Origin: Caecitellus pseudoparvulus
Taxonomy: Eukaryota > Protista > Bigyra: Bicosoecida
Assembly: GCA_965644315.1 (NCBI GenBank)
Contig: CBFFRQ010000211.1
Location: 1 to 55,611 of the forward strand
Length of the DNA: 55,611 nt
Direction of reading: 5' to 3'
In this document: positions 1 through 36,233 of the stretch, in pieces
Layout: every line of letters starts with the position of its first letter
How positions within the stretch are numbered: the first letter of the stretch is position 1
Program-made: the position numbers and the translations under genes
Notes under the pieces: generated by a model
Database searches by the model: none
What the model saw: the letters and a program-made list of their open reading frames with translations, nothing else
Told to the model about the DNA's origin: nothing

Positions 1-592
1 TAACCCTAACCCTAACCCTAACCCTAACCCTAACCCTAACCCTAACCCTAACCCTAACCCTAACCCTAACCCTAACCCTAACCCTAACCCTAACCCTAAC
101 CCTAACCCTAACCCTAACCCTAAACCTAACCCTAACCCTAACCCTAACCCTAACCCTAACCCTAACCCTAACCCTAACCCTAACCCTAACCCTAACCCTA
201 ACCCTAACCCTAACCCTAACCCTAACCCTAACCCTAACCCTAACCCTAACCCTAACCCTAACCCTAACCCTAACCCTAACCCTAACCCTAACCCTAACCC
301 TAACCCTAACCCTAACCCTAACCCTAACCCTAACCCTAACCCTAACCCTAACCCTAACCCTAACCCTAACCCTAACCCTAACCCTAACCCTAACCCTAAC
401 CCTAACCCTAACCCTAACCCTAACCCTAACCCTAACCCTAACCCTAACCCTAACCCTAACCCTAACCCTAACCCTAACCCTAACCCTAACCCTAACCCTA
501 ACCCTAACCCTAACCCTAACCCTAACCCTAACCCTAACCCTAACCCTAACCCTAACCCTAACCCTAACCCTAACCCTAACCCTAACCCTAAC
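1..592. repeat. Telomere, (TAACCC)n = (TTAGGG)n on the minus strand, about 98 repeats
   Basis: Perfect hexamer array from base 1 with one variant (TAAACC at 121-126); C-rich strand 5' as expected for a left chromosome end; ends ...CCCTAAC directly into TTTCCAAA. Confidence 0.99.
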
Positions 593-839
593 TTTCCAAA
601 TGTCAAGCTAATCACAAGTTGTGAAGTGCTAACATTGCCTAATCCAGGCGCTCGTGCACCCTAAGTGTGGTGCTGCGCAGCGCTTGTGCGTTGGCAGTGC
701 AGCGCGCGGGTGAGCAGCTGTGCGATTTCCGCACGCCACGCTCCCGCCGCAGTGCTAAGTGCGGCTCCGGCTGGACGCTGCACCACTGCTTGCCCGAAAC
801 CATTGCTTCATCATCGCGCGCACCAATCCAGGGCACCAG

Positions 840-2849
840 CATCCATGCCAGCCAAGTCCCTGCGTTTTCATGGACAAGTGCCTGGAGAAAAAAGGTCAGG
901 GTGGCACACAACAGGTGCTGACTGACATGTCACGCTGAGGGGCAGTGCCCACCTTTCCAGCTGGTGGTGGGAGACGGACTGGGACACGGCCAAGGATGGA
1001 TCGATGCCGTCCGCAAGGGTTTACCCTCAGAGTGAGCGAGGCCGAGTTTCCGGAGCTGTTCCTGGGGACAGGCGCGCTAATTCCATGCTTGGAACAACTG
1101 CACCAGGCAGACCATTCTCCTTGTCACGCTGCCGAGGACGGTGAAGGCCTCACACAGCCCCAGCGTTGCTGCTGTGCGGGAGAAGAATTCTCACCATCAT
1201 GCTGAATGGGGCCTGGTGGGAAGGCAGGCATTCAAATACGTGGCAGGTTCATTGCCGCCAGAGTGCGCGAGGGTCAGCGTGACTGCCCTCTCCTTTCCAG
1301 AAAGAAGGTTGCCTAAAGATCTCTGAGGGCAGCAACCAACATTGCCTGTGAGATGGGATGTGGCCCAAGATCTTGAAGCTTGTTCATGCCCATGTCGTCC
1401 ACTGATTTACTCCCACTGCCAAGTGGCCCAAAGCCTGCTGTGATGACTGCCTCTCTCAGAAGATATTCTCTGTCAGATATTGCTGCGACACTGCCAGCTT
1501 CTTGCTGGTGCGTCCAAGTACAAAGCAGACATGGTGGGCATGCAGCCAATGGCAGCTCTGTATTTACACACACAAGAGCATTTCCGCCTCACAGCCTTCC
1601 GAGTCGCACCACAGTCACCAAGCCAATGCCTTTCCTAGCAGACCCTTCCAACAGAGCCTGGGCACCCACTGCAGGGAGGACTGCCAGCCCAGGCAGACCT
1701 CCTCGTCCAGCAGCTGCAGGCCACAGCAGCGGGGCAGCCACCCTGCAGTCTGCACCAAACCATACGGGCGCTGCTGTACTGCTTAACAGGTGCCGCTGCA
1801 CGGCTTGACAGGCAACCTTGATTCTGTCCTCCCTCTCAGCAACCCCTTGCCTCATGCACGTTGCCCTGGGAATAGTTTAACTAATTGATTAATGGGTTCC
1901 AACTGCTTTTGGTTAATGTAATATAGGAGAAATAAAATTTTCCAATGGATGAGGACCTTGAACTTTCTTTCACGCAGCTAACTTCATCTAAGCTATGTAG
2001 GATGATCCTTCTGCCAAGAGAGCAGTGCACAGTCACCCTCCCTAAGGCACACACTAGACTTGGAGGGTCTCATGTTAGCCCTGTGAAGTTAGAACCTTTC
2101 CAGTGCTGACTACCTGAGGCAGCATGTTTGACTTCTTCAATTGCTCCTGGTACTGACATGCAGTTTGATGATGGGCACTTCACTAGCCTGTCCACTGCCC
2201 TGATTTTCATCCTTATTAATGCATCAATGAGGCCTACCGGGAACCGAAAGGCAACACACTGTGGCTCAGACACTCTGCCTGTTGATGTCAAGGCAGAGAA
2301 AGAGATGACTCCGAGGCAAAAGTCTTTGCCGGGGGTGTACTTTGGCTTGCTCTCATTTACACACTTGAGGTGTCTCCCATTCTTCAGCTCACGGTCGTCA
2401 ACGCTGAGAAGTCCACACTTGTACTGTGGAACCCTGACGAACCCTTCACGAGCACCACTGATTCAACTGAGCCGCTGCCTGAACACACTCGACCGATGGG
2501 GCATTGTCTGTGTGGCCTGCCCCATCCTCCCCCGCTGAGTGGCAAGCCGATTCCCTTCAAAGACAGAGTGCGGCTGGCCATGCTGTCCCTCAGGTCTGAC
2601 TTTCCCCACTCCTGCCTGTGGAAGGAGGGATTTGCAGGGGGACTGTCTACCCAAAGACTCTCATCACTGGCAAGAGCACACGGGTGTGTTCTCCTGGTGG
2701 TATCACCACGCGCCAACAAGCAGCTGCCGATGAGAGAGCCAAGACGGGTGCCGACCCCATACTGTCACCCATCCCAACATCTGTACAAGTCGCCGACCAG
2801 ATCAGTAGCGATGCACCCCATACCCCTGTCGGCCGCGGAAGACACATGA
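840..2849 (+). pseudogene. Disrupted ORF1 of unit 1 (start approximate)
   Basis: Frameshifted fragments align with intact ORF1 of unit 3: AATNIACEMG~EATEIACQSG (same 741-nt offset from unit start), LVLWNPD identical, PFKDRVRLAMLSLRSDFP~PFRDRLRGALQSLRDDFP, GTVYPKTLITGKSTRV~GTVHPQTLIAGKGTRV, TRQQAA identical. Confidence 0.88.
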
Positions 2850-5800
2850 CACGCTCTGCACTTGCTGTTGGGAATGCACGGCTCTTGCGCCGTGTGTCCA
2901 CGATGTCAGCTGCCCTGTGTCCAGTCTGTGTGCAGTGCGTTGTCCATGTTGGCACTCTGTGTCACAGAGCTCGGGGGGCACGGCCTGCTCGACACGGAAG
3001 TCATGGGCCTTGGAATGCTCTGCCCAAGCCTCACCTCAGATCGGCCCGTCGGGCGGAGTGAGGCCGCCTCGTTGCTTGATCGAGCATTCCAATGGCCTCA
3101 GTGATCCCACCGGACGTTGATATCATGCAGACGAAGCCATTTGATCCCGTGTCCAAGAACCCATCACACATGTGTGCACCAACTGGCACTTCTACAGCGA
3201 AAGGAAGGCACGTTGATCCGGATGATGAAGCTCTGCACTCACAAGAGGTTTATGGCAGCTTGAGTCTGTTGTTCAACAGCTCCGCTCACCCACATGATTG
3301 TCATCATGGGTGACTTGAACACTCATCCAGGTGACGAAGGGTGGCACGTGGGGAGCAGATCACTGGGAGAACTGGACCGGCATTCTCAGAGCCCACTGAA
3401 GACATCCTTGCAGATGCAGCTCCTCTGCGAGCAAGGGCTCAGAATGATCCCAGCCGGACTTGTGGCCTGCCAACGCACAGGGTAAGGGTCGGGCTCTGGA
3501 CCACATCCCGATGACTGAGATAACTCATGTATGTTGAGCAGACCACTGCACATCACAACAACGTTCTCCAGTGGACGAAAAAGAGTGCCGCCTGACCAGT
3601 CCCCAGTGACCATCATCTTGTTGCAGCAGAAGTCCGAGTGAAGCCTGCCAAGCGAGTGTGGACATCATCCAAGAGCCCCCATGCACAGGCGGTGCCACCC
3701 CGGTGGACCTCAGCGACGAGCGAACAAGGGGCGCAGCTGACAGCCCGAGGATCCCTCAGCTCGCGGGCCACCGCGCTCCAGACAGGCAGCGCTGCCCCGA
3801 GCCTATCCTTTCTCAACGGTGCCATCTGCCGCGGCTACGACGACATCTGCAGCCAAGACCCCACGTGACCTCTTGCCCCAGCTGAAGATGGACATCAAGG
3901 CGGCCAGCGGGCTCAAGAAGTCCATGATTGCACGGTGGCCCAAGCTGGTGGAAGACCATTGCCAAGCTGCACCGAAGCTTCACCGCCACCGGTCGGCATC
4001 CTCAGCCAGGACCACGCCCGTGCCATCCGAGAGGGAATCTCCATGGCCACCAGCGAGTGCCACACGCCACGCTTCAATGCCGCAAGGATGCAATGCGGAA
4101 GTGCACGAGGCTTGTGAAGAAGCGACATGCCATTTCCGTCCAGGATCCGAGCACGCTTGAGGGAACTCGCTGTCACGGACTCTTCACTGCCCACCAACAC
4201 ATCAAGCGCCTGTCAGGTCGAGGTCGTCGAGCCCGTCGAGCTCCCATCAGGGTCCGTGAAGTCCATGCAGGGAGTGCTCATCTCCTCCCCTGATCTGGTG
4301 AAGGAGGAGGTTGCCAAGCAGATGTCTGGCATCCTGAAATAACAAGCTTCAGGCCAACATCGCTGAAGCATGGGCTGGCAAGGTTCCTTCCTCAGCTTCC
4401 AAGAGTCCTTCACCCTGCCAGTGACATGGCTTCCCTCCAAGAAGCAAGTCAAAGTCCTCATGGGATCACTCAGCTTGCATCGACACCCAGGCTCTGGCAA
4501 GTTCCAATCAGAGCACATCAAGTATGCTGGGCCAGGCTTCCAAGACATCTACTCCAAGCCAAGTCATCCAAGTGCTGTAACACGGCACCTGCCCGCCAGA
4601 CTACCATGCAGGTACTGGGTCATCATCCCTAAGAAGACGAGGCAAGGCGGCCTCGCACATACCGCTTGACAGTGCCGCCCCCTCCTGCGTAGCTCTTCTC
4701 TCAGTGGCCGCTGCATGCCTGAGTCCTGGATGCAAACATGGGTGTCGAAGGAGCAGGCTGGCTTCACTCGACACCGCAACACGCATGAGCACATCTTGGC
4801 TCTCCAAGAGGTGATCAAGGGCCACCTGCGACAGTCAACAGCGCCAGTGCAAGTCCTGGTACTCGTGGACTCGGGAGCATTCGACTCTGTGAGCCACGCA
4901 GCCATCACAGAGATCCTTGAGGCTGCCTCCTCCCTGCGCCACTCCTGGCCGTCAATATGAGTACATGTCCAAGGCGACGGTCTCCATCAACACGCGCCAT
5001 GGTCTTTGTCGCCCCCTTCCTGTCAGCAATGGTGTCCCCCAAGGAGGAGCTCTGTCCCCCTCCTCTTCAAGGTTGCGGATAGATGTGCTGTCGCAAGCCC
5101 ACGATGCTCCTCCGCTACCCAGGAGTGGGCATCCCAACACCAGCAGGCCATGTCACCCACACCCTGTATGCAGACGACCCGGCCTGCATCGCAACGTCTG
5201 CCACGGCCTTGCACCGGAATCTTCGTAGAGGTGAAGGCCATCGCTGCCCGGGTTGGCCTTGCCATCAACCCGTCGAAGTCCGGGGTCATATCCTTGCCAA
5301 CTCCGTGCGAGGCAGCTGACACCAGTCAGTGAAAGGAAGAAGTTGGTGGGGAGGCTCGGCTGCCCTCAAAGCGGGCAGCATGCTGAAGGTTGGCACCAAG
5401 TCCATCCAACGGGTGGCCGAGTACACCTACTTGGGTGTGCTGATGTCCGAACATCCTGCCAAGACCCGTGCACTTACCCTGCAACAAGCTGGGCTTGCTT
5501 GCATCCAGCCGGGTTCACTGCGGGCGCGCTGCTCAGTGCCACCTGCTCACGTGGCAGCGGCACCTGCTGGGTATGCCACCGTCACGTCAGCCGCCGATCA
5601 CATGCTGTCCACCCAAGCCAACAGTTCCCTGCTTCCGCTGCGCGATGTTGACCGCGGCGTCGCCCTCGCCTTGGACAGGACTCAAGTCGGCCTGCAGAGT
5701 GCACTCATGCGCCCCCACAGCTACGCCAAGCTGGCTCTGTGCGGAGTCCTGCCTGCCCACATCCGCTCCACGCAACTGCGGACTGGATGTTTGTCAAGGC

Positions 5801-6975
5801 TCTCCGGGATGCCGTACTCGGACACCCCTGCCTGAGTTCTGTCCTTGACCATCCTGCAGGCCTTGACCTTGGCGCTCGCTTCGATGTCGACGACCTTCAT
5901 CGTCGACACCATTGCTGATGGAGGTCGACTCCGGGCTGCCAGTGTCCTGCTCCGTGGGCACTGCATGCCCTCTTGACCTCTGGCTCATGGGCTGCATGCC
6001 AGACCTTGCACAGCTTCGGCTTGCATGTGCACCTGGCTCTGAGCATACACAGCCTTGCCCAAGTCCTTGCCGGACTTAAGACCACCCCGGGCCTCCACAG
6101 GTCTGCGGTGCTGGGGTGGCTGCCAGCGAGACGCTGTCCATGGCCGAACCCCTGGCCTCGCCGGCAGACACCCCCCGGGCCCTGCGTCGCCAAGTCCTCG
6201 CGTCGTATCTTCATGTAGCCCAGGCAGCGAGTGCAGCTGCCCACTACACCACCGACAGCCGAATCCCCCAAGTGCAGAAGCCCAGGTCAAAATGTTCCTG
6301 GGCCTGGTGCAGCACTTCGTGTGGCTACATCCACTGCCACACGGGGTGAACCCCCTCTCTGGGTCTGTCCTGATGACAGGCCCACAGAGTGATGGTCCAT
6401 CACTTCCAGACCTTACAGCTTCTTCATGGGGGGACAGTGCCACTCTGTACGAGTGCTGTCCGATTTGCGGACTCAACACCGATGCACAGCCGCACGTGCA
6501 CATCCTGCTGCACTGCACCCACCACGAACCTCACCATGGCACGCCAACACACGATGACCAAGAGTTCAGAGAACTGGCCAACAGGTCAGCTGTGCCCGAG
6601 TCCGCGGCGGGCCAAGTGGGGCAGTGCCCGCCCATCCCCCCAAGATCTGCTTACTGCGCTCCTCCTTCGCTCCCCGGACCCAGAGCCGCGAAGCCTGCGG
6701 GACCTCGAGGTCCTCCACAGGCTCCTGCTCTGCGGGCAGGGCTCACCGGTGGGGCTGCCGACGAAGAGCAGCTTTGTTCTATGAAAGAGGCGGCTGTCCT
6801 CTCCCACCCCCACCTCGTCCACCGTGCTGGTCCTTGCCCGTGTCCGTGCCCCGCAGCTGTATGGCAAGACATCCTGCGCAGCGCGGTTGAGTTCACAGCA
6901 AAGGTGGCGGGTCACAGTCACTTACATGTTGCGTATGACCGATGCCCACCACCTTGCTGTCCAGAGGCATGCTGA
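2846..6975 (+). pseudogene. Disrupted ORF2 of unit 1: APE-type endonuclease + non-LTR reverse transcriptase + CCHC finger (end approximate)
   Basis: APE motifs LAVGNAR, LCVTE, IMGDLN (GDLN 3309-3320), SDH (3605-3613); RT motifs IIPKK, EQAGF (~4751), AFDSVSH, GVPQGGALSP, LYADD (5164-5178), INPSKS, YTYLGV; CPICG...HILLHC (~6454-6516); many stops and frameshifts. Confidence 0.93.
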
Positions 6976-7860
6976 GTACCTGTGGTGGGCAGTACATGGG
7001 CGCGGGGCGCCGCTGCCTGGCCGCACGCAGCCAGTGGCCGCGGCCACGCGGCACACGCGCAGGCCCTGCACTCGCCGCAGGGCACGCACCTTTTCCTGCC
7101 AAGGCTACGCGCCGTCCACGGAGGTAAAGGTCCAGAGGACGCTGCAGCACTTCATGGGGCCTCAGCCAGCCCATGCAGACACTGATGGTGAGGGGGAAGG
7201 GCCCGATGGCTCCTGTGAAGAGAGCGAGGAGTGGGGGCGGAACGCAGGCGCGGGCGGGGGAGGGAACAGCCACGCTTGTGGCCGCGTCTACCCTCCACGA
7301 GTGTCCTGACGTGATGAACCTGTGTGAAGGTGGTGATAACCACGGTAGCCCGAAGCAGATGCCCAAGCACCTTACCTTTTACTTACCACATAGCCTGCGA
7401 GTAGCAGGAGTGAGCGAGCAGGCCTTCGGCCGCGGCGTGCAGCCGCAGTGCTGCACGGCCGCGGCCCGGATGGCGGCTGACGACAGCGCAAGCTCACCAC
7501 CACGAAACCAGGGCGTGACGGGGTTGAAGAAGAAGGTCCTTTTCCTTTCTGTATCCCCCTTGATGCGCGCGATGCGCTCTGTGGCGTGGCGCGTGTGTGC
7601 GCACGGGTGCTGGTGTGCGCGATCGAATTCCGCACCACGCACCCGGCCGAGTTCCCGCGCAGAGGCGGAGCACACACCTCATGAAGGGCGCAGAGAGGCC
7701 CATGAGGGCCACAGAGGAGGTGGGTGAGGAATTTGGATTATGATCTGTTGTCAAGACTGCGCGGATGCCTGGGTGTGCTCTGGTGTGCCCCAGGTGTCTG
7801 GCGCTGGCGGAGCAAGGGATGCAGAAGTGGCGGAGGAGGGCCAAGATGATGAATTGGAGC

Positions 7861-7940
7861 GGGCAGGACCTGCCCTAGCAAGCGGCGGCAGATATTACGG
7901 GCGCAAGCCTGTGCTCGTTGCGAATCCGCGCCAAGCGGTG
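7861..7940 (+). other. Predicted conserved 3'-UTR RNA stem-loop of unit 1
   Basis: Nested stems GCG/CGC, GCGGC/GTTGC, ACGGGC-GCAA-GCCTGT; compensatory changes relative to units 2/3. Confidence 0.6.
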
Positions 7941-8049
7941 CAGCCGCTGTGGCGTCCTACATGTGCAGAGAGTGCATTGTGGGGCGCCCGTGTGACGCTC
8001 AAGCTGTACGGTGCCAAGCTGTGCACGAGGTGTAATGCATTGTGAGTTG

Positions 8050-10976
8050 CTAACTTTCCAAATGTCAAGCTAATCACAAGTTGTGAAGTGCTAACATTGC
8101 CTAATCCAGGCGCTCGTGCACCCAAGTGTGGTGTTGCACAGTGCTTGCTGGTTGGGTGGTGCGCACCGGGGCGGGGTAGTGCGAATTCCGCACACCATCG
8201 CACCGTGGCTCCCAGTTTGCGCCCTCGGTCGGGGCATGCACCTGGGATCGACATCAAAAGCATCATTGACAAGCATCATGAACGCCCAAGTGGATCAAGT
8301 CCTGGGGGTCCTCTTCGTGGAGGGGTGCCTGAAGCGCAAGCAAGTGCTCGGCCCCAGAACAGGTGTCTTCACTGACATGCCACGTCGGGGTGCCGCACGC
8401 ACCTTCGAGCTTGGAGGACCCCTGCCCAAGACTGATCATGATAGTTCATCTTCGGCACGGGACATGTGGCTCGAGGTCTATGGGGAAGCCGCCGAACGGC
8501 TGATCCCAGGGCTGAGTGCGGAATTCGGCAACGCCAATGCGGCCCTGCGCCAGGGACCCACCGGATCGCCAACCATCCTCGTCACGCTCGGAAGTGAGGG
8601 TGATTCACCAACAGTGGCACGTCAACTTCGCATTCTTGCTGCTCAAGAGGACGACTTCGCCATTCGAGTCGGCCAAGGTGGGTTCGTCGCCGTGGCCTAC
8701 ACCAACACCAAGCAGTTCGCATCGGCGAAGGCGAAAGTGAAGGTGAAGGCCCACCCCACCGCCATCCAAGTGGCCCACCAAGTGACCAAGGAAGCAACCG
8801 AAATCGCCTGCCAGTCAGGTGATGTTGCCAAGGTCATGTGCCTCGTTAGGTCCCACTTCGACCATGGCCCCGTGCCAGCCCAAGCCGTCCGTCCCAGTGT
8901 CAGACAATCCGTCCCCTCCGAGGGTGATGCACCTGTCGACACCAAGACACCATCGACCTGGACTGACACTCAGCTCGACAAGGCACCGAAGAAGAAGAAG
9001 ACCCGTCGAGGCAAGCGAGGAAAGGGCAAGTCAGCCGGACGATCCCTCACCTTCGAGGACGTCTTCATCAAGAACGTCCGGCCACCTGCACCTCGACCAA
9101 CCTCACCACCTGCCACCCAAGGCTCACCCAAAGATACCGTCACCACCCCTGTGGTGCATGCCATGTTGCCTTCATCAAGGGTGCAGCGGGGCGTCGACCG
9201 CAAGTGGCCGTCCCCCACCCCGTCGGGCGAGGCAAGCCCCGAGGTGCACCGGTATCGGCCGTCTGCAGCAGCAGCATGGGAGGTGATCACAAGGGTGGTG
9301 CCTCTTCATGACAGTGTGCGGACACCCGAGCACCTGGCCGAGTACCCCATCAAGCCTGGCCCTCTGGCCGACCTGCTGTCATCGACCCACGTGTACTCTA
9401 ACGTGGGGGGCGGGCCTGTGTCCAGGCCTGTCTCGAGACGGCAGCAGGGGAGAGGGTCTTCGAGGCTGGGGACCTCCTCCTACTCCAGCATGCAGCCACC
9501 ATCAACGCTGCCCAGCTTGCCTTCAAGCACATGGTCAGGCAGCTGGAGGGGGTGGTCAGTGACTCGTCCAGCTCGGACATCATGGACGTCGGCCAGAAGC
9601 CACCCTCCCCCTTCCGCTCAGACGGGCAACGGGTGGCCGTCTTCCGCAACATGCTGCACCAGCACTCGCCGGATGACACCTTCCTGGCCCCAGGTACACC
9701 ACCAGTCCTGCTTCCCGGCCTGCACCTGCTCATCGACCGCATCAACCAAGGGTACCGTGCCCCAGCCGGGCATGATGACCTTGGCCAGGCCGGCGTCGAC
9801 CCCAGCCAGGTTGATGAAGAGGGTGACCAAGAGGGGCACCTCGACGGAGTGCTGTATGCCTTCGCACTTCGAGAGGTGTGGACCGACAACACGGCCCATC
9901 TGCAGCTCATCCTCGTCGACCATGATCGAGGCAAGCTGGTGCTGTGGAACCCCGACATCCCTGACCTCCATGACGAGCTGCCCCTGCACAAGTGCATGAC
10001 CCGGCTGGCAGCCGAAGGCATCAACGTCTTGTACCGGATCTGGACCACACCCGAGGCGGGCAGTCCAGCACCCTTCCGGGACAGGCTTCGAGGGGCACTC
10101 CAGTCTCTCCGAGATGACTTCCCCCCCCTGCCTCACAAGGCCACCGACGGCACCGTGCACCCCCAGACCCTCATCGCTGGCAAGGGCACAAGGGTGGCCA
10201 TGCCTCATGGGCGGATGACCCGACAGCAGGCCGCCACCCTGGAGGCTGAGGTCAAGGACCCCCTCAAGCGGCTGGTGCCTGAAGACGGCGAGGGTCGCCT
10301 GCCCAAGGTCAAGGATGTGCCCCACATCTCGATCGGGCAGATGGGTGGACGCCTGATGTAAGTCACCTGTGGGGGCATACTCCCTGTGCCACACATGACT
10401 GAAGCTTTGTGTCGCGACCGACGCACATAGCTGACATCGGACATTGGAAAGTCCAACCCAACCTCACCATCACCAACCCAACATCGATACCAACACATCA
10501 GGACTCGGCTCAGTGGAAGGGGAAGGCACTTGCAGCAAGATCTGTGAGGCCGCCCCCAAACCTGAGCCGAAGGGACAGCCGGGCTGGGTCGTGTGCTTGC
10601 ATCTCAGCAACACCCAGTCCGTGTCGAGTCCATATCCTCCAGCCCACACCGCCACCCAAGCCAAGCAAGTCGGGTCTCCACCCCTGGACATCGGACCGAG
10701 ACGGACGAGACTGGACTGGACGGACAAGACAAGAGTGGACCGAGACCTGGACCTACACCTCAAGACCATCCCACCGGGGCGGGCGCTGAAGCGCCAAGAC
10801 AGACGGCGACTTATACAACGGACACGAGTCTGTGCTAGTCGCAAAGCCGTGCAAGCGGTGCCGTCGTGGTGTCTGTGTCACTGCATTCTGTTGTGGCGCA
10901 GGTGGCACCACATGTCCAAGCCCAAGCTGTACCATGATGTAGCCTGCATGGAGGCAATCTGCAATGCATTGAGTAG
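8050..10976 (+). mobile_element. ORF1-only non-autonomous telomeric retroelement (unit 2, 2927 bp)
   Basis: Direct tandem repeat of 10977-13904; shares 5' leader, ORF1 homology and 3' end with unit 1; no RT or APE motifs seen. Confidence 0.92.
8278..10361 (+). pseudogene. ORF1 of unit 2 with a single -1 frameshift
   Basis: G6 at 9405-9410 versus G7 at 12332-12338 in unit 3 splits the ORF (track ORFs 8116..9999 and 9531..10361); could be a homopolymer sequencing error. Confidence 0.75.
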
Positions 10977-13904
10977 CTAACTTTCCAAATGTCAAGCTAA
11001 TCACAAGTTGTGAAGTGCTAACATTGCCTAATCCAGGCGCTCGTGCACCCAAGTGTGGTGTTGCACAGTGCTTGCTGGTTGGGTGGTGCGCACCGGGGCG
11101 GGGTAGTGCGAATTCCGCACACCATCGCACCGTGGCTCCCAGTTTGCGCCCTCGGTCGGGGCATGCACCTGGGATCGACATCAAAAGCATCATTGACAAG
11201 CATCATGAACGCCCAAGTGGATCAAGTCCTGGGGGTCCTCTTCGTGGAGGGGTGCCTGAAGCGCAAGCAAGTGCTCGGCCCCAGAACAGGTGTCTTCACT
11301 GACATGCCACGTCGGGGTGCCGCACGCACCTTCGAGCTTGGAGGACCCCTGCCCAAGACTGATCATGATAGTTCATCTTCGGCACGGGACATGTGGCTCG
11401 AGGTCTATGGGGAAGCCGCCGAACGGCTGATCCCAGGGCTGAGTGCGGAATTCGGCAACGCCAATGCGGCCCTGCGCCAGGGACCCACCGGATCGCCAAC
11501 CATCCTCGTCACGCTCGGAAGTGAGGGTGATTCACCAACAGTGGCACGTCAACTTCGCATTCTTGCTGCTCAAGAGGACGACTTCGCCATTCGAGTCGGC
11601 CAAGGTGGGTTCGTCGCCGTGGCCTACACCAACACCAAGCAGTTCGCATCGGCGAAGGCGAAAGTGAAGGTGAAGGCCCACCCCACCGCCATCCAAGTGG
11701 CCCACCAAGTGACCAAGGAAGCAACCGAAATCGCCTGCCAGTCAGGTGATGTTGCCAAGGTCATGTGCCTCGTTAGGTCCCACTTCGACCATGGCCCCGT
11801 GCCAGCCCAAGCCGTCCGTCCCAGTGTCAGACAATCCGTCCCCTCCGAGGGTGATGCACCTGTCGACACCAAGACACCATCGACCTGGACTGACACTCAG
11901 CTCGACAAGGCACCGAAGAAGAAGAAGACCCGTCGAGGCAAGCGAGGAAAGGGCAAGTCAGCCGGACGATCCCTCACCTTCGAGGACGTCTTCATCAAGA
12001 ACGTCCGGCCACCTGCACCTCGACCAACCTCACCACCTGCCACCCAAGGCTCACCCAAAGATACCGTCACCACCCCTGTGGTGCATGCCATGTTGCCTTC
12101 ATCAAGGGTGCAGCGGGGCGTCGACCGCAAGTGGCCGTCCCCCACCCCGTCGGGCGAGGCAAGCCCCGAGGTGCACCGGTATCGGCCGTCTGCAGCAGCA
12201 GCATGGGAGGTGATCACAAGGGTGGTGCCTCTTCATGACAGTGTGCGGACACCCGAGCACCTGGCCGAGTACCCCATCAAGCCTGGCCCTCTGGCCGACC
12301 TGCTGTCATCGACCCACGTGTACTCTAACGTGGGGGGGCGGGCCTGTGTCCAGGCCTGTCTCGAGACGGCAGCAGGGGAGAGGGTCTTCGAGGCTGGGGA
12401 CCTCCTCCTACTCCAGCATGCAGCCACCATCAACGCTGCCCAGCTTGCCTTCAAGCACATGGTCAGGCAGCTGGAGGGGGTGGTCAGTGACTCGTCCAGC
12501 TCGGACATCATGGACGTCGGCCAGAAGCCACCCTCCCCCTTCCGCTCAGACGGGCAACGGGTGGCCGTCTTCCGCAACATGCTGCACCAGCACTCGCCGG
12601 ATGACACCTTCCTGGCCCCAGGTACACCACCAGTCCTGCTTCCCGGCCTGCACCTGCTCATCGACCGCATCAACCAAGGGTACCGTGCCCCAGCCGGGCA
12701 TGATGACCTTGGCCAGGCCGGCGTCGACCCCAGCCAGGTTGATGAAGAGGGTGACCAAGAGGGGCACCTCGACGGAGTGCTGTATGCCTTCGCACTTCGA
12801 GAGGTGTGGACCGACAACACGGCCCATCTGCAGCTCATCCTCGTCGACCATGATCGAGGCAAGCTGGTGCTGTGGAACCCCGACATCCCTGACCTCCATG
12901 ACGAGCTGCCCCTGCACAAGTGCATGACCCGGCTGGCAGCCGAAGGCATCAACGTCTTGTACCGGATCTGGACCACACCCGAGGCGGGCAGTCCAGCACC
13001 CTTCCGGGACAGGCTTCGAGGGGCACTCCAGTCTCTCCGAGATGACTTCCCCCCCCTGCCTCACAAGGCCACCGACGGCACCGTGCACCCCCAGACCCTC
13101 ATCGCTGGCAAGGGCACAAGGGTGGCCATGCCTCATGGGCGGATGACCCGACAGCAGGCCGCCACCCTGGAGGCTGAGGTCAAGGACCCCCTCAAGCGGC
13201 TGGTGCCTGAAGACGGCGAGGGTCGCCTGCCCAAGGTCAAGGATGTGCCCCACATCTCGATCGGGCAGATGGGTGGACGCCTGATGTAAGTCACCTGTGG
13301 GGGCATACTCCCTGTGCCACACATGACTGAAGCTTTGTGTCGCGACCGACGCACATAGCTGACATCGGACATTGGAAAGTCCAACCCAACCTCACCATCA
13401 CCAACCCAACATCGATACCAACACATCAGGACTCGGCTCAGTGGAAGGGGAAGGCACTTGCAGCAAGATCTGTGAGGCCGCCCCCAAACCTGAGCCGAAG
13501 GGACAGCCGGGCTGGGTCGTGTGCTTGCATCTCAGCAACACCCAGTCCGTGTCGAGTCCATATCCTCCAGCCCACACCGCCACCCAAGCCAAGCAAGTCG
13601 GGTCTCCACCCCTGGACATCGGACCGAGACGGACGAGACTGGACTGGACGGACAAGACAAGAGTGGACCGAGACCTGGACCTACACCTCAAGACCATCCC
13701 ACCGGGGCGGGCGCTGAAGCGCCAAGACAGACGGCGACTTATACAACGGACACGAGTCTGTGCTAGTCGCAAAGCCGTGCAAGCGGTGCCGTCGTGGTGT
13801 CTGTGTCACTGCATTCTGTTGTGGCGCAGGTGGCACCACATGTCCAAGCCCAAGCTGTACCATGATGTAGCCTGCATGGAGGCAATCTGCAATGCATTGA
13901 GTAG
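10977..13904 (+). mobile_element. ORF1-only non-autonomous telomeric retroelement (unit 3, 2928 bp)
   Basis: Tandem copy of unit 2; 3' end ...AATGCATTGAGTAG joined to the telomeric scar. Confidence 0.92.
11205..13289 (+). CDS. Intact ORF1 protein of the telomeric retroelement (694 aa from ATG 11205; alternative ATG 11163)
   Basis: Long open frame; basic NLS-like PKKKKTRRGKRGKG; Pro-rich linker; occupies the position upstream of APE-RT in unit 1; no gag CCHC knuckle visible. Confidence 0.85.
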   Translation: MNAQVDQVLGVLFVEGCLKRKQVLGPRTGVFTDMPRRGAARTFELGGPLPKTDHDSSSSARDMWLEVYGEAAERLIPGLSAEFGNANAALRQGPTGSPTILVTLGSEGDSPTVARQLRILAAQEDDFAIRVGQGGFVAVAYTNTKQFASAKAKVKVKAHPTAIQVAHQVTKEATEIACQSGDVAKVMCLVRSHFDHGPVPAQAVRPSVRQSVPSEGDAPVDTKTPSTWTDTQLDKAPKKKKTRRGKRGKGKSAGRSLTFEDVFIKNVRPPAPRPTSPPATQGSPKDTVTTPVVHAMLPSSRVQRGVDRKWPSPTPSGEASPEVHRYRPSAAAAWEVITRVVPLHDSVRTPEHLAEYPIKPGPLADLLSSTHVYSNVGGRACVQACLETAAGERVFEAGDLLLLQHAATINAAQLAFKHMVRQLEGVVSDSSSSDIMDVGQKPPSPFRSDGQRVAVFRNMLHQHSPDDTFLAPGTPPVLLPGLHLLIDRINQGYRAPAGHDDLGQAGVDPSQVDEEGDQEGHLDGVLYAFALREVWTDNTAHLQLILVDHDRGKLVLWNPDIPDLHDELPLHKCMTRLAAEGINVLYRIWTTPEAGSPAPFRDRLRGALQSLRDDFPPLPHKATDGTVHPQTLIAGKGTRVAMPHGRMTRQQAATLEAEVKDPLKRLVPEDGEGRLPKVKDVPHISIGQMGGRLM

Positions 13905-13917
13905 CTAACCCCTAACC
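13905..13917. repeat. Interstitial telomeric scar CTAACCCCTAACC
   Basis: Two imperfect CCCTAA units, same polarity as the terminal telomere, exactly at the proximal end of the array. Confidence 0.85.
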
Positions 13918-14133
13918 TCATTTATGGATTTATTGTCCCCCTCGAGCCACAGCAAGCAGCTCTGGAAACTCAGCAGTCTCAGTACGCCCACCCTGACCTC
14001 ATCCACCCACAATGCGCCAAGCAGCCATCTGTGTTCAAAGTGCATTGCCTTCACACAGCCCACCAGGTGCACAAGGGTCAGCCGATCCGCACACCAGCTT
14101 CCCACCGCAGCCGCTGAGCAAACTTGACACAAC

Positions 14134-17100
14134 TCAGTCTTTGGGCTGCAGGTTCTTGATGGCGTCGGCGATGCGCTGCTTGAGCGCAGTGGCCTTTTCC
14201 CTGAGCTGTTTTGCCACTTGAGAAGGGTCTGTTCCTGCCGCCAGGCCCAGGCCGCCGGCCAGGGGCATGGCGGAGTTGACCACTGCGCCAAAGGTGCTGC
14301 CGCCCGACATGGCCTGCACGCCCAGCAGGATGAAGACGAGCATGATGACGAGCAAGACCACAAGCACCATGAGGCTGTACAACAAGACGTCCCACGAGAG
14401 GCCCATGGCTGAGAGGGCTGCTTCGGTGATTTCCCGCAGCAGGATGTGGATGCCCGCCTTGAACTCCTGGCGGTCCAGCACGTTGTCCGACTCGATGACG
14501 TCCAGAGACGCGAAGATGCGCTTGGCCCGCTCGTTGGTCAGGGGCAGTGACGCATTGGCAGTGAAGTCCACGAACTCGTCGAAGGAGATGCCGCCGCCGT
14601 CAGTGTCAAAGGCGTCGTACAGCAGGTCGATGGCTTGGTCGGACAGGCGCCCGTTGACGAGGGGCAGGGAGGCGAACTTGTTGGCGAGCTTGGTCTTGGT
14701 GCCCGCCACGACGCTGTCCATGGCCGCCTTGGCCTTGTCCTTGGCAGCGTCCAGGGCCACCTTGGCCGCTGCAGTTGCCGCTGCAGTGGCGGCAGAGGCA
14801 GCTGCGCCGGGAGATGAGGTGTCTACTCCAGCCCGCTGCAGCTGCTCCACGAGGCCAGTGATGATGTTGATAATGGTCTCCAGGCGGTCCTTGTTGAAGC
14901 CGCCGAACTGCAGGGCCAGCTTGCGCACGCCGGAGATGTCTCTGCGCGACAAGGACAGGATGGCGTCCACGATGGCCAGGGCGCCGTGCTGCTCCACCGG
15001 CACCACACTCTCCAGCAGCTGCATGATGTGCTCTTGCCGCTTCCCCAGCTCCTCCGCCACCGCCTTGCTCACTGCCAGCGCCTTCTTGGCAGAGCTGCCG
15101 CTGGTGGAGCCCGCTGCAGACACGGCTGCCGCAGCCGCCGCGCCACTCTGCCCTGCCGTTTGTGCGCGGGACGCGACAGAGGCAGCTGAGCCAATGACGG
15201 ACTCAGCCTGTGACGCAGCGACATTGGAGACGTCTTCCAGGGCACGCAGGCGGGCCTGCATGAGCGCGATGAAGTGCTGGATGACGCCGAGGGCGGCCAC
15301 GAGCTTGGGCTCGTTCTGCACCAGCGCCTGCACGAAGACGGGGATGGTGGTGAGGAGCTCACCAGGGTTGCCGCGCAGGAGGATGCCGCCCAGCGTAACG
15401 GCCAGGAACTTGGGGTCGCGCAGGCGCTTGGCGAAGATCTCGTCGCCACTGCCCTGTGACAGGAAGTCCGTCACCATGCCCAGGGATGCGAGGGCCCCCT
15501 GTGCCTGGGAAATGCCGCCTGAGATGGCCCCTGCCGCGCTGCCCACAGCTCCCAGAGCGGAGTCCCGCGCACCCATGATGTCCGCACTGAGCAGGGAGGA
15601 TAAGTTGGCGCCGCCCACCATGCTGCTGGCGGCGTCCTGCGCCTGACCTGCCGCTGCACTAGCAGACGCACTCAGCGCAGCCAGAGGCGCTGCCACAGAC
15701 GTCGCAATGCCATGTGAGACTTGTGACGCTGCGAACTTGACCACCGCCATTGAGGCCTGTGCAGCCTGCGACACCTGCCCCTTGCGGGACCGGGCCGCCT
15801 TGCCTGACGTGTCGCGCTGCAGGACTGCCTGCACCTTGTCCACTGGCCCCAGCAGGCCCATGGCAGACTCGATGGAGGACGGTGACACGCTCTGCAGCAG
15901 CTTCACCTCTTCGAAGCTGGTCAGACCGGGAGGCAGCTCTTGGCCTCCATGGGACACCTCCCGGACGCGCTGCACGATGGCCTCGGCGGCCGGCTTGGGC
16001 AGGCGTCGCAGCAGGAGGCGGATGAGGGAGTTCCGGATGCTTTCGTTGTGCAGCAGAGTGAGCTGCACGGTGTTTTGTGTCAGCATGACGCGGGGAATGC
16101 CAAGGATGCGGCAGAGGCCCGTCGCGACGTCGCCCTGCATGAGGGAGAAGAAGCCGATGAGGACGCGGTCCACCTCCGGCAGGACAAAGGCCGGGTTGGC
16201 GCCCCACACAGCCCTGGACAGCAAGCGCACAGAAGCGCCCTTCACGCCAAAGTACTTCTCCATCGTGCGGTTGGACATGCCCCGCAGGGACTGCAGTGGG
16301 TGCAAGCCCACCCCCACACTCCAACGCTGTGCCGCCTGCAGCACAGGCAGCACTTGGTCCAGCAACCAAGGCCTGCGGGTGGTCTCTTCGTCCCCGCGGT
16401 CGCCGGAAGATGCCGCCACAGCTGCAAGGGCAGGGCCGGCAGCCCGCGCCACGGGAAGAATGCGCAGCAATCCCTCAGCAGGCGGCAAACGCCCTGTCAC
16501 GAACTTCAGGATGGTGCTGAGCACGCGGGCCGTGGCACGCACAGGCTTGGCCTCACTGCCGACGTCGTCGTCCTCCTCCCTGCAGAAGGGGATGTTGCTG
16601 AAGCGGGCAGACTCCACACGCGTCAGCAGCTTCAGAGCCCTGTCCAGGTCAATGCAGGCGCTGTCACGCGTCAAGTCCAGGCCCGCCTCGGCGGAAGCAC
16701 GTGCAAGGTCGTCGCGGACAGCCAGAGACTTAACGGCTGCCGCGGCATCGTGGGAGGACAGCGTGCGCATTTCATCTTCGTCGATCATCAGCTGCACCGT
16801 CGCAGAGCTGCTGCGCGCATCGCCCACCAGGCGGTGGAACTGGTTCATGTGTTCCTCCTGCTTCTTGGCGAACTTGTCGCTCATCTCCGCCTCCACGAAC
16901 TCGTCCAGGCGGTCTCGCTGCGAGTACAGGTCAGACACGAACGCCATCTGCATGCGCATGGCATCGTGCACGGGCAAGTTGGCGCCGTTCACTGCCTCCA
17001 CCATGTCCAGGCGCAGCTCTTCAGCCACGGCCTGGGACGTGAGCAACTCCCCGATGGGGCGGTAACCTGCCATGGCCCGCGCATTCATGTGCTTCATCTG

Positions 17101-20100
17101 GGCGCGGTGCACGTGGAAGCGGCAGTGAAACTTGCCTCGCATGACGCTGATGGAAAAGGCGGGGTAGATGGGCATGCCTTGCAGGTCCAGGTTCTTGAAA
17201 GCGACGCCCATGGGTGCGTCGAAGTTCCCGTTCAGACCGAAGGTCATGGTGCGCTTGTCGTAGTCCACGGCGCAGCTGATGATGTCGCCGTTCTCCCACT
17301 CACTGCCGAAGGAGCCGTCATCCCCGCCATTCCACTTCTTCCGGCGCTGGCCGTCCCAGGCCCACGAGTTGGGGTCGTCGCCAACGCCATTGTTGCGCTT
17401 GGTCGTGAAGGCGTTGTTCACCCAGCCCACCTGCAGGTACCGGTCTCGCCCAGAGAACATCTGCAGCTCGTAGTAGTACCTGCCTGACGTCACCGCTGCG
17501 CCTGGAATGGCCACAGTGGGGAACGAGGACGCTTTGCTGGTGTTCAGGGAGTACCGCACGCGGCCACTGCTGTCCCCCATGAACAGCCCATCGATGCCGA
17601 GGATCTGGTACTTCCGCCTGCGAGACACCATGGGCAGGGGGCGCGTTGGCCCACCAGCGTTGAACTCGGGCGCATACTTGCTCTGCAGCACCTTGTGGCT
17701 CTCGCTGCCTGCATACCGCAGCGCGTCGTCGCTGTCGTCCATGACTGCAAAGTCAAAGTAGTCCTCCGCCTCTGCCACCTGGTCGCCGCCCTTGGGCGAC
17801 ATAGCTGAGCCGCGTCGGGGGCTTCCCTTGGAATCCGGTGAGCCGAAGCCCTTCTTCTTGCTCTGCCCTGCCAGCACCCGCACAGTGCTCATCTTCAGCA
17901 TGGCGTCCTCCTTGTGTTCATCCAGGTCATCATTGTCCTCACCAGGGTTGCCGCTGGAGGAGAGGCGGCCGGGAGAGCCGTCCTGGGCTGGCTTGGCTTG
18001 CCCACTGCCATGTTTCTGCTTCTCTTCCGCTTCAAATCCGCCTGGGCTGTCTGCCCGACCCGAGGCAGGGGTTGGCAGAGGAGGTGGTGCCTTGGACTCG
18101 CCAGCGCCGTCCTGCGGTACAGACGATGAAGACTCGTGCAGGCCACTCGCACCTGAGCCCGTCAGCTGTGCAGAATGCTCCGCACGGGCCTCCAAAGCTG
18201 AGGATCGATGCCTGGCGCCCACTCCGCTCAAGTCCACCTTGGACACTTGCGTGGAGGGATCCTCCGCGTGGCTTGCTTCGGACAAGCAGATGAAGTTGTT
18301 GTGCATGTCCAGAGTCATCAGCTTGATCTTGCGATCGGCGCCAGTGGTGATGAAGAGGGAGTCAATGGCAGCGGACAGCCTGTCCACCCGCAGTGTCGGC
18401 ATGGAGGAGCTGATCCACGGCCCCATCTTGTGCTGGAAGTCCTTGCTCATGGGCACGATCTGCGTGATGCTGCCCTCGTGTTGGGGTGCCATCTCAGCCA
18501 CCACCCGCCAGTCCATCCACGATGACTCCGTGACATGAGCAGAGCGAGGCGCGCCGACCACAGCCAGCAGTCGCCCATGTGACGTGCCCACCAAGATGAC
18601 GTCATTGGGGGTAGGCATGCTGGGGTGCGGCGCATCAACCACGATGGCCTCCTCCTCCTCACCCATGGACGCTTGCTTCTCTGTGGCAGCAGCCACGTAG
18701 TCCAACCACACCTGCCGCTGTACTTTGCCGTCATCGTCGGTGGCCTCCCACTTCACCGCCAGGGGGTTCGCGATGGACGAGACCTGCGTAATTCGCTCCC
18801 CTGTAGACAGCTCGATGACCTCGGCGGCAAAGCGGTGCAAGCAGGCGCTTGCTCCGTGACATTGCTGAAGTAGATGCCGCCGGCACTCGTCACCGTCGCA
18901 AACCACGACAGAGCTCCCCAAGCCTTCTGATTGGCAGGGACATGGTCAATGAGGGGCAGTTGGCTCTTGTACTTCAACTGCAGCCCCGTCACTGGCGCTG
19001 CGGCAAACTCGCGGGACGCGTCTGTGTCTGGACCCAGCCTGTTCCGCACCTCTCGCGTGGCCCCGACAAAGGCAGAGGGGAAGGCGAAGCAGTACGACAC
19101 GATGCCAACGGGGTTGCCGTCATCGGGAATGGGGCCGTGCAGCAGCAGGCGCGCCTGTCGCTCCTTCTCTAGGGTCGCCTCGTCCCCGTCTTCCAACAGC
19201 ACATGCCCGTTGCCGCAATGGAAGACGTAGATATCCCGCCCAGCAGTGAGCAAGTACTTCGTATCGTAGCCGCCGGTGTCTGGATCCCTTAGAGGCCAGT
19301 GCGCTGTGAAGTTGTTCAAGCGCCCTGGAAGCAACTTGGCGGTGATGTGCTTGGCTGACTTCAGCCACTTCGTTGTGGCGCCCAGCGGCTCGGCATCCAG
19401 CTGGGTCAGTCGCCAGGGCACAATAGGCTTCGACGCAGTCTGCACGAACAGGGCTGGCTCCTCCTCCTCAGTGGGGAACCGCTTCGTGCCTTGGACGAGC
19501 GTTCGAGCATCCATGAAGCACTTGCCGTCCTCCCCCGTCAATGGAGTGTCCAGCTTCTCCAGCCTGACGGGAACGGGCTCGTACCCTTCGCCAGGCGGCA
19601 CGCTCATCTCCCGCAAGAATGCTGGCGGGTCGCTCTCGCCTGAGTCTGCGACGCCCGCGGCCGAATCGTGCACTTCCACAGCGGCGAAGTCGCCCTCCAC
19701 ACGGTCGTTGGAGATGCCCCACACGCAGACACCGACCTTGTCAATGCCCACCAGAGCCACTGACCGCGCACCAGAAGTCTCTCGCTCACCACGGCACAAA
19801 GACTCGACTGCTTCGCCCTCCGTCTGCACGCCTTGGCCAAGCTCTTGGATGTACTGCAGGCTGGCGTTCACCTGCCGCACACACACAGAGCCTCGGGAGT
19901 CACCTGTCACGAGACGCAAGCAGGCATGCCCCTCATCTGATGACGAGTTCCGGATGAAGGCGGCGGCGATGATGCCTTCAAGAGTGGCCACTGACGATGT
20001 CGGGTGTGGCGCAATAAGGTGTGGCACGATGCTGCCACCGCAGCGCTCATCGTCAGCCCTTGATGTTGCAACGCCACGCATATCGAACATGGTCGTGTTG

Positions 20101-33665: not shown

Positions 33666-36233
33666 TTATCGCTGTCGCAAGGAACGTGCAGCCTGGGGTC
33701 CACTGCCTGCCACGGCGCTGTACAAACCTGGTGGCACGCCGCCCAGATCGCTGGCGGCCCGGCGTGGCATGCTCTGCGCCGAACCTGACCCACGTGGGTC
33801 TGGCGCGGCCTGTTCAGTCCACGGCACAGCCCGGGTCAAATCCTGACTCACTAGGGGCAGCACCACTCGTGACGCCACCCCTGCCCTCCGATCTCGAAGC
33901 ACGGCCGAGTGGTGGCGGGTGGGCTTGGCTCGGTGGCCGCTTCTTTGGCGGGAGGGCTGACGCGCTGGACTGCCGCTTGATGGCCGCAGACGTCCCTGGC
34001 CCGCACGCGGCGACGACGGCCGAGCTCCCCCCCGAGAGGCTGGCGGTGAGTGTGTGGAAATGGGGGTGAATGCGCGCTGCAACTTGGCCAGCGTGTGGGC
34101 GGGTGAGACACGTGGCGTGCGTTGGCGGCGGGGAGCGCTGAGCAAGCCCCTTCCTCCGCCAGAACGGGGCGGGTCGGATGTCTGTGGCGCAGCCCTTGGC
34201 GTAGCACCTCCAGCATCTTCGCCTTCCTCCTCCTCCCCCGCACTGCCCGCCTCGGCGTTGGCGGAAAATGCTGAGCGCAGCGCAAGCAGCCGAGCCTTCA
34301 GGAGCGAATCAGCGCCACCTCCCCGCAGGGCCGAGCGTGTCCCAGTGCCTGCCGTAAAAGCATCAGCTGCAGCCTCTGCGAACTGTGCGTAGGCTGTGGC
34401 CACATCGCCACCGGCCGCCACAACCCCTTGTAGTGTTGCATGTTGACCCGGCAACCGGTCATACGCCTCCGTGCCGTCTGTGCTGCTACGGGACGCCCCG
34501 CCATTCAACGCAGCAGCGAGGGCCTTGCTGTGCACTCGCCGCGTGAGGAGCGGGTCCAACTCGGCGTCCAGCGAGTCGTGGGGCGGGTACATGCGGCTGC
34601 AACCTGGCGCGACCAGCCCCTCAAACCACCGCCGCTTGGCTTCCACGGCCTGGTGCACCGTCATGCCTGCCACCAGCTCGCGCAGCGACGTAGGAGGGCC
34701 TGTCGCATCTGCCGCTCGCACTGCGTGGGCTGCCTCCTCGTCGGAGCTGCTGCTGTCGTCAGCGTCTGGCGTGCTAAGCTGACGAGCCGCCCTGCCAGCA
34801 GCTGACGCAAACACGCCAGCACTGCGCGTGGCAGAGTACAGGCGCGACTTGGACTGCTGCCGGGCTGCTGCGTCAGCCTTGCGTTTGTCGCTGGCCTTCA
34901 TGTTCACGAGGGCCAGCGCCTCGCGCACCAGGCGCCCCTTCACCGCCGTGTCCAGGCGGCTGTCGCACGCGAGTGAGGGTGAGTGGTTCACTTCAATCAG
35001 CCACGGGCGCAGCGCGTCGTCCAGCATGATGTCGCACCCCAGCACCTCAAAGCAGGCGCTGGACGTGAAGCTCTGACTGGGCTTCATCCCTGCGACCTGG
35101 GCGCCCCACCGCAGCCCTGTCGGGATGTCCACTCGGCTGCCATGCGGCCCGGCCACGGAGCGGTACACGTGCGCCAGTTTGGGCTGTGCGGCCAGCAACA
35201 TTTTTGTCAGCATGTGCCCAATACTGGCCCACACCTCCTCTGCGTTGTGACCTTGCTCGCCCAGCCACCTGCGAAACCACCGCAGGGTGCGCTTGCTGCC
35301 GCCAGCACCGCCTGCCTCGGCATCCGCCCCCACAAACCCCGCCGCGTGCTTGTTGATGGAGTAGTTGGTGAGGTGCATCGTCACATGGGACAGGTTGCCC
35401 TGACTCGGCGCCACGTACGGCGACGTGGCCAGGCGCACGAGGCCCTCCTGGAACAAGAACGCGCGCAACGGCCGCACCGACGTCACCAGCACGTACACGC
35501 GCAAATCGAACTTCAAGCCGTCGATGAGGAGGGGGCGGGAGATGTACCGCTGCACGACCTGGGGCTCGCGTGGGTCCACCCCCTCCCCTCGCTTGGTGAG
35601 GAAGATGCCCTTGCCCTGGCACCCTGCGTCTGGCTTGACGATGTACGTGCGGTGCTTGCCACGCCGCGCAGCCGCCTTTTTGAACTCCGTCCACTGCTCC
35701 GGCAGCACCCACGTCTGGGGCAGGAAGTTGTACTCTGCCTTGAACAGTCGCCCCATCACTCCCAGCGTGCGTGCCAGCCAAGCCTGCCGTGTGCGCAGCG
35801 TAGCACAGCTAAGTGTAAAATGCGCAGCAGCAGCAGAAGTGCGAGGCGGTTCAAACGCACCTTGCGGGCGAGAATGTGCATGCCTGGAAAGTGATTCAGC
35901 TTCTGGTGCCGCTTCAACCGCATGGCGCGCTCAGCCGACACTGACGTGTCCATCCACATCAAGTTCCAGGCCTGTGGAGGTGGCGTGGGGCGGTGTTGGC
36001 GTGGCGTGAAACGTGGTCAAACGGCACCGCTCGCAGCTGCCCCGCACCGTGCTGTCAGGGTCCTTGTCCACCACCCAGCCCCGCTCCCGCACAGCATGCT
36101 CTACAATGGCATACTTGCAGTTCGCAAGGTTCACCACCACCGTGCGAGGGCGCTTGCGCTTCGGCCGCGAAGTCGCGCCGCTTGCCTCGGACTTTGAGGC
36201 CCGAGGGCTGAGAGCGGCACTCCGCCGAGGCAT
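33666..36233 (-). CDS. TTLL6: Tubulin polyglutamylase, TTLL6/13-like (introns 36047-35972, 35860-35784)
   Basis: LNHFPGM..LARK, YIVKPDAGCQGKGIFL, KFDLRVYVLV, HLTNYSINK, CFEVLGCDIMLD..PWLIEVNHSPS; introns restore frame; 3' end of the low-complexity tail less certain. Confidence 0.9.

Follow-up and report, generated by a model that had tools for sequence, protein, structure and literature searches.

The window considered here, positions 1–55611 of contig CBFFRQ010000211.1 in the genome assembly of the bicosoecid protist Caecitellus pseudoparvulus (GCA_965644315.1), begins at a chromosome end, since positions 1–592 are filled by (CCCTAA)n, read inward from the terminus (98.7 copies, 99% matches); the G-rich strand runs 5' to 3' towards position 1. 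Behind this terminal telomere tract lie three retroelements in head-to-tail order on the plus strand: a long element, e1 (593–8049), and two short elements, e2 (8055–10976) and e3 (10982–13904), which encode no reverse transcriptase (RT). Positions 593–13904 are best read as a polarised array of telomere-specific retrotransposons without long terminal repeats (non-LTR), of the long interspersed nuclear element (LINE) type, copied by a mechanism primed by the telomeric G-strand, ...GTTAG; we put the probability of this reading at roughly 0.8. Array and flank are numbered within the window of 55,611 nucleotides (nt), and genome-wide statements refer to searches of 30.6 Mb in 215 contigs.

An identical 74-nt leader occurs at 588, 8050 and 10977, with start-to-start spacings of 7462 and 2927 nt. 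A single telomere-phase pentamer, CTAAC, joins the 3' end of e1 to the leader of e2 (8050–8054), another joins e2 to e3 (10977–10981), and e3, the innermost element, is separated from the subtelomeric flank by a 13-nt telomere-like remnant, CTAACCCCTAACC (13905–13917). Poly(A) was absent from every window junction inspected (e1/e2, e2/e3 and e3/flank), and scanning of 13918–55611 revealed no remnants of these elements. An earlier description made from the letters of the window (the sequence-only reading) had claimed that only three head-to-tail elements, all with distal 5' ends, separate the telomere from the flank, and the leaders and junctions bear this out.

The same description presented e1 as a 7.46-kb element with ORF1, an apurinic/apyrimidinic endonuclease (APE), RT and a CCHC motif. 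All of these motifs are legible, but e1 is not an intact element with two open reading frames (ORFs), the remnants being spread over three frames. Comparison with intact copies identifies e1 as a diverged, frame-broken member of family A, an APE-type LINE. On the plus strand, its leader (593 to about 740) is followed by an ORF1-like remnant with a WNP motif (2427–2435), the APE motifs GDLN (3309–3320) and SDH (3605–3613), the RT motif YADD (5167–5178), the CCHC motif (6457–6516) and a 3' RNA module (about 7845–8049). There is no long open reading frame in e1, and a Pfam search of 20 stop-to-stop pieces returned nothing but one weak RVT_1 trace because the element is frame-broken; the domains became clear only through its intact relatives, and reading e1 against an intact copy recovered all parts of the long protein, scattered across three frames.

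Family A has at least 20 copies in the genome. The other copies examined are 99–100% identical to one another, while e1 shares about 91% identity overall with the intact ones, only 54–81% in the first 2 kb, and differs from them by more than 110 small indels of 1–5 nt. Decay resembling repeat-induced point mutation was considered and rejected: the spectrum is not dominated by C>T and G>A (C>T 124, T>C 99, G>A 52, A>G 47), and indels prevail. At many sites the letters specific to e1 were not seen in the contigs of one marine metagenome and of two runs on the organism's DNA, a comparison limited by the loss of rare variants from read contigs. The telomere tract and the short elements beside e1 are clean. 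The element e1 is a diverged non-coding copy that may reflect either real decay or a poor consensus at the contig end.

The coding capacity of the autonomous elements is apparent elsewhere in the genome, where a search for an intact ORF2 instead found intact single-ORF copies with APE, RT and CCHC. Several such relatives have one open frame of 2207–2336 amino acids (aa) containing Exo_endo_phos (the APE) and RVT_1, in the order N-terminal ORF1-like part, APE, RT and C-terminal CCHC. RVT_1 is recognised in the intact copies with E values of 1e-28 to 1e-32, and Exo_endo_phos exceeds the Pfam cut-off in three families. All long ORFs, and e1 as well, carry the C-terminal motif CPxC..H.H....C; nothing but this CCHC motif is found in the C-terminal region, and the APE sits upstream of the RT. 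Families only 54–59% identical in the APE domain agree without exception in the APE motifs WNV.G, TEP, Y.PN, GDLN.H, LDH and SDH, which supply the residues N, E, Y, D-N, D and D-H; the conservation of these motifs equals that of the RT. The absence of LTRs, the 5'-truncated copies and the C-terminal CCHC motif are LINE features. Of the solved structures, R2 (R2Bm) and L1 ORF2p come closest to the RT. Sequence and profile comparison of the APE with the solved TRAS1, R1Bm and L1 endonucleases in the PDB gave no match, and only ExoIII was retrieved (E 0.015–0.34). Word-indexed searches with the APE–RT region, using one sequence and a five-family profile, yielded a single close relative, a metagenomic protein 51–60% identical; the few other matches had 21–32% identity and bore no source-given name other than "hypothetical protein". 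Clusters combining APE and RT were confirmed in the Atlas, where they are listed without taxa.

The short elements belong to a distinct family, B. In e3 (on the plus strand, as throughout the array), a 5' untranslated region (UTR) of 223 nt (10982–11204) precedes an ORF at 11205–13289, stop included, which encodes 694 aa from the first Met, and a 3' UTR of 615 nt (13290–13904). The sequence of e3 is identical to at least 22 other copies. The ORF of e2 starts at 8278 and appears frameshifted owing to the one base by which e2 differs from e3, a G6 run at 9405–9410 in place of G7. An accurate DNA run contains only G7 at this homopolymer, so e2 and e3 are probably both intact and the G6 an assembly error; several other B copies in the assembly share the same truncation to 634 aa, which points to a systematic homopolymer error. 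The B protein is homologous to the N-terminal part (about 720 aa) of the long ORFs and ends just before the position of their first APE motif.

The sequence-only reading had treated the 2.93-kb units as "half elements" of e1, and here it has to be corrected. A recent origin by internal deletion from the neighbouring 7.46-kb element, or by local duplication, would account for the 74-nt leader shared identically with e1 and for the same order of parts. However, likeness to e1 at the DNA level ends after about 150 nt (86% identity) and resumes only in a diverged 3' module of about 200 nt. Across all long families, it is confined to the first 150–360 nt or so and the last 200 nt, the best autonomous match in the genome being 74% over the first 360 nt. 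At the protein level, identity to the N-terminal part of the long ORFs is only about 41%, and it stays within 40–45% over about 700 residues for every long family sampled. Since the genome contains no closer autonomous DNA, B is a family of its own rather than a deletion of its neighbour. The unit is also far from local: at least 47 full-length copies at about 100% identity, and truncated ones besides, occur in the genome, and a 97%-identical copy is present in an independent marine metagenome. An origin by deletion or duplication from e1 is therefore hardly credible. Family B is the commonest member of the system, its depth in read contigs being about 6–10 times that of family A.

Two sequences tie these families together. 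In every family, including B, roughly the last 200 nt can be aligned and adopt one shared multi-hairpin fold (13700–13904 in e3), which terminates in the palindrome CAATGCATTG plus 5–7 nt. Of its 49 pairs, 20 show compensatory double changes; the paired share of cells is 93%, compared with 29–47% when the partners are slid, and none of 500 shuffles reached the observed values. At the other end, the first 100 nt or so of the leader are nearly invariant across families. The leader was also considered as a structured RNA, but this found no support: only 2 of 47 predicted pairs covary, and the covariation term is positive. Being conserved in sequence without covariation, the leader is a primary-sequence signal, which could most obviously serve as an internal promoter or as a site for end recognition. 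No Rfam family matches either the leader or the 3' module. Within the leaders (593–700, 8055–8160 and 10982–11090) there are three spaced telomere-like motifs, CTAATCA, GCTAACA and CCTAATCC, which read TTAG-like on the strand of the complementary DNA (cDNA) and could be binding sites for telomere proteins.

Confinement of the elements to chromosome ends in one polarity, as the sequence-only reading proposed, was confirmed by a census of leaders and 3' ends. The leader was found 68 times on 48 contigs: 56 matches are on the plus strand, all within 12.2 kb of the contig start, and 12 are on the minus strand, where terminal position was judged from telomere repeats lying distal to the match. Directly upstream of 33 leaders (27 plus, 6 minus) there are at least three telomere repeats. 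A search for 3' ends followed by CTAACC returned 146 matches (118 plus, 28 minus) and none with the reversed pattern as control, and the last 5–7 nt before CTAACC fall into at least nine variants that mark separate families. The sole clearly internal plus-strand match is a relic of about 140 nt, 155 kb inside a 1.35-Mb contig (C18:153665-156685), made up of a 3' end of about 80 nt, CTAACCCTAA and a 60-nt B-like 3' fragment; it may mark an old chromosome end.

The system also occurs outside this assembly. Two contigs from independent marine metagenome assemblies (ENA) contain relatives of these elements. In one, a 97%-identical B lies between telomere repeats and the leader of the next element; in the other, an autonomous relative of 2159 aa, 60% identical in the RT region, is bordered by telomere repeats on both sides, the CCCTAA phase being that of the junctions in both contigs. 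The same-phase flanks thus place the system in natural populations or sister species. The stretch itself is represented in many ocean metagenomes. In marine metatranscriptome contigs matching 7866–8021, telomere-like repeats are joined to 5'-truncated 3' modules, which could represent read-through transcription of arrays or carry-over of DNA. The host also encodes telomerase: a TERT gene is present at C77:24238-27642, where one open frame of 1389 aa contains Telomerase_RBD (E=7e-21) and a weak RVT_1.

Arrays at ten further chromosome ends are likewise head to tail and in plus orientation. Their outer copies are full length and 99–100% identical within a family, and the inner pieces are 5'-truncated and 94–97% identical. 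Such uniformity across many ends could also arise if the arrays were subtelomeric blocks spread or homogenised by recombination or break-induced replication, retrotransposition being ancient or rare. The proximal flank lends some weight to this idea, as 13918–19917 belongs to a subtelomeric repeat family whose members number at least 20 and occur comparably far in from other contig ends. Yet these flank copies are only 92–96% identical and thus far more diverged than the elements (about 100%). Moreover, the composition and order of the arrays vary from end to end, junction fillers, points of 5' truncation and internal tract lengths differ individually, and many long ORFs of 2000–2300 aa are fully open. 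Spread by recombination is accordingly quite improbable as the main explanation.

The junctions indicate how the elements may reach the chromosome ends. All 146 3' ends abut CTAACC, so that position and orientation within the telomeric repeats are uniform; CTAAC comes next after each 3' end in one and the same phase of the repeat, with poly(A) at none of the junctions. Beyond the 3' end, the telomere-like tract mostly spans 12–13 nt, about two repeats, and then gives way to an older truncated element or to the flank; lengths of 5–6 nt are met sometimes and of 36–418 nt occasionally. Direct element–element joints hold a single CTAAC. Upstream of the 5' ends the sequence reads ...AAC, as a rule in register with a long telomere tract; in some cases a few filler bases are present. 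According to the favoured explanation, the element RNA would end in CUAAC(CCUAAC), as the junctions without poly(A) suggest, and would pair with the 3' end of the telomeric G-strand, ...GTTAG, priming cDNA synthesis towards the chromosome tip. Priming by ...GTTAG would place the element 5' end distally and fix its polarity. As the leader is preceded by CTAAC, the finished cDNA would end in ...GTTAG and could be extended by telomerase or by the next element, and this re-extension would explain the in-phase distal telomere tracts, the joints with a single CTAAC and the proximal remnants of about 12–13 nt. Because B keeps just the N-terminal protein, the leader and the 3' module, it would have to be copied in trans by the enzymes of the autonomous elements, presumably through recognition of the common 3' module.

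Two sources of the primer can be envisaged, an APE nick in duplex TTAGGG repeats or a natural or eroded chromosome end. The balance tips slightly towards the former, given that conservation of the APE catalytic motifs matches that of the RT. In its pure form, the latter would dispense with the endonuclease altogether, in the manner of HeT-A/TART or of the endonuclease-deficient Penelope-like elements: the RNA 3' end, CUAACCCUAAC, would anneal to the G-overhang of a short or eroded end, and the APE would be irrelevant to targeting. The clustering of 3'-proximal tracts at about two repeats, extending down to 5–6 nt, is what nearly eroded ends or RNA-templated repeats would leave behind, and the single CTAAC at element–element joints fits as well. 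So does the gradient from truncated and diverged proximal copies to full-length and identical distal ones, and this age gradient and the very short tracts favour addition to nearly eroded ends. In contrast, catalytic motifs that stay invariant across families 50–60% identical argue that the nuclease is used, and the position of the decayed e1 distal to two pristine B copies is more easily explained by insertion into an internal telomere tract; both observations favour nicking. A fixed short proximal remnant is compatible with nicking too, as the endonuclease-dependent SART1 of silkworm, which needs at least three repeats, inserts at a defined repeat (PMC7265360). Pure end addition is on balance a tentative alternative, one to be taken seriously but less probable than not.

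Several points weigh against telomere-specific retrotransposition as set out above. An RNA starting and ending in CUAAC is deduced from DNA junctions, and the single RNA library compared with the stretch gave four small contigs, possibly derived from DNA. Recombination or gene conversion between ends, rather than recent transposition, may account for part of the near-100% identity of the copies. The distal-most element, e1, is the most decayed, which contradicts an order in which the youngest copy is outermost unless e1 is an assembly artefact. The tracts of 5–6 nt at some joints are probably shorter than an endonuclease target would need, and the data do not separate the endonuclease route from the end-priming route. 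The non-LTR assignment of the RT derives from RVT_1 and from matches to solved structures.

The sequence-only reading did not recognise the ORF1, the N-terminal protein common to all families. No sequence homologues were found beyond this group of elements: the B protein has neither a Pfam family nor zinc knuckles, a word-indexed search returned only the 97%-identical metagenomic copy, and an exhaustive profile search through 1.84 billion representatives produced only a 48-aa fragment (E 1.4e-4). The AlphaFold model shows two ordered parts split by a disordered, basic, proline-rich linker (modelled at 11790–12212). The N-terminal part (11322–11789) aligns weakly with RNA-recognition motifs (RRMs), that of human L1 ORF1p among them (Z about 5). 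The C-terminal part (12213–13139), folded alone (pLDDT 73, pTM 0.75), resembles papain-like peptidases, which make up 49 of its 50 best-matching chains, led by PcJOS (Z 8.0) and the Josephin domain of ataxin-3 (Z 7.5), although these Z values fall in the grey zone of the search tool itself. C39 peptidases, staphopain, calpain and UfSP are further neighbours; Foldseek gave an E value of 5e-3, and matches in the Atlas were to C2, C39 and C58 peptidases. Three residues, C381 (12345–12347), H541 (12825–12827) and N558 (12876–12878), are invariant in eight sequences at 40–45% identity. In the model, the Cys lies at a helix start, the His at a strand start and the Asn, 17 residues later within WNP, at a strand end. 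They sit where a papain-type triad would and are putative catalytic residues. With moderate confidence, the protein can be predicted to combine an RNA-binding, RRM-like domain with a peptidase- or deubiquitinase-like (Josephin-like) domain.

Beyond the array, the sequence-only reading had placed the first host gene. An ORF does adjoin the elements, a SPRY-domain ORF of 1595 aa on the minus strand (14134–18921), but the flank there is itself the subtelomeric repeat family described above. About 20 kb from the chromosome end there is an ORF of the tubulin-tyrosine-ligase family, also on the minus strand (33666–35759), which fits a flagellated eukaryote.

Retrotransposons specialised on telomeres have been described in a handful of lineages. 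To our knowledge, work on the HeT-A type of labour division, in which an abundant Gag-only element depends on a rarer RT donor, is limited almost entirely to flies, which have lost telomerase. Here, the same architecture is met in a small-genome unicellular marine eukaryote that retains TERT. It is tempting, if rather unlikely at present, to regard the elements as a working second arm of telomere maintenance beside telomerase instead of mere parasites in a safe niche, a convergent and telomerase-compatible HeT-A system in a protist. If this were true, CUAAC redundancy would let critically short or broken ends act as primers, the GTTAG end of the cDNA would be extended at once, and B would be retained because its RRM-plus-peptidase-like protein delivers the ribonucleoprotein to chromosome ends. 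The system is tractable, with arrays at dozens of ends, at least nine families with a common 3' RNA module and many open frames, and it should be of high interest to researchers of telomeres and mobile elements. How the elements find chromosome ends, whether they cooperate or compete with telomerase, and how the partner recruits a foreign RT are now testable questions. The N-terminal protein, which belongs to no known family, may join an L1-ORF1p-like RRM to a deubiquitinase-like fold, and the fixed-site targeting of TTAGGG repeats may interest builders of site-specific insertion tools.

Known telomeric elements share individual traits with this system. The sequence-only reading knew of no description matching the combination, and none was found in the literature searched. 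Its proposal of an autonomous/non-autonomous pair similar to HeT-A/TAHRE, coexisting with telomerase repeats, is supported by the abundance of B, the intact copies of A and the presence of TERT. The TRAS and SART elements of Bombyx mori (R1 clade) are likewise APE-type LINEs with a fixed position in the repeat and a fixed orientation per family, coexist with telomerase-type repeats and depend on their 3' UTR for recognition. Unlike them, the elements described here have no poly(A) and a single fused ORF in place of separate ORF1 and ORF2, with an N-terminal protein devoid of zinc knuckles and detectable homologues and an APE without a sequence match to the solved TRAS1, R1Bm and L1 endonucleases. 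They also have an abundant RT-less coding partner, and they reside in TTAGGG rather than TTAGG repeats and in a protist host.

With HeT-A, TART and TAHRE of Drosophila (Jockey clade), the system shares head-to-tail terminal arrays with distal 5' ends and 5'-truncated inner copies, as well as a commonest member that encodes only a Gag/ORF1-type protein and relies on the RT of a partner. However, Drosophila has neither telomerase nor telomere repeats, and its junctions are of oligo(A), whereas here TERT is present, telomere repeats cap and separate the elements, oligo(A) is absent, the endonuclease is conserved and the ORF1 protein is unrelated.

MoTeR of Magnaporthe and FoTeR of Fusarium are related to the CRE/SLACS clade, and their endonuclease is restriction-enzyme-like. 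They too are non-LTR elements embedded in the telomeres of TTAGGG organisms, and MoTeR1 and MoTeR2 form an autonomous/non-autonomous pair. The junction design is common to both systems: in MoTeR and FoTeR, a few TAACCC repeats come after the 3' end, and the 5' end has a short telomere-like motif (PMC12857005). In contrast, the elements described here have an APE upstream of the RT and no restriction-like endonuclease downstream, and B encodes a conserved protein. Endonuclease-deficient Penelope-like elements (PLEs) such as Athena and Coprina also occupy chromosome termini with their 5' end distal and bear at the 3' end short reverse-complement telomere repeats able to anneal to G-overhangs, but their PLE-type RT lacks an endonuclease, while here a LINE-type RT is joined to a conserved APE. 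Unlike the present elements, Zepp of Chlorella has poly(A) and no known coding partner, and the Giardia elements GilM and GilT are not known to be APE-type. Zepp and GilM/GilT are also LINE-like elements stacked at the telomeres of unicellular eukaryotes with telomerase repeats (PMC10088271).

Collectively, the system departs from defining features of both TRAS/SART and HeT-A: it has no poly(A), a fused ORF with an unrelated N-terminus, and telomerase. It nevertheless combines a TRAS/SART trait, an APE-type LINE with a fixed telomeric site, with a HeT-A/TAHRE trait, polarised arrays with an RT-less partner, and its independent origin is plausible.

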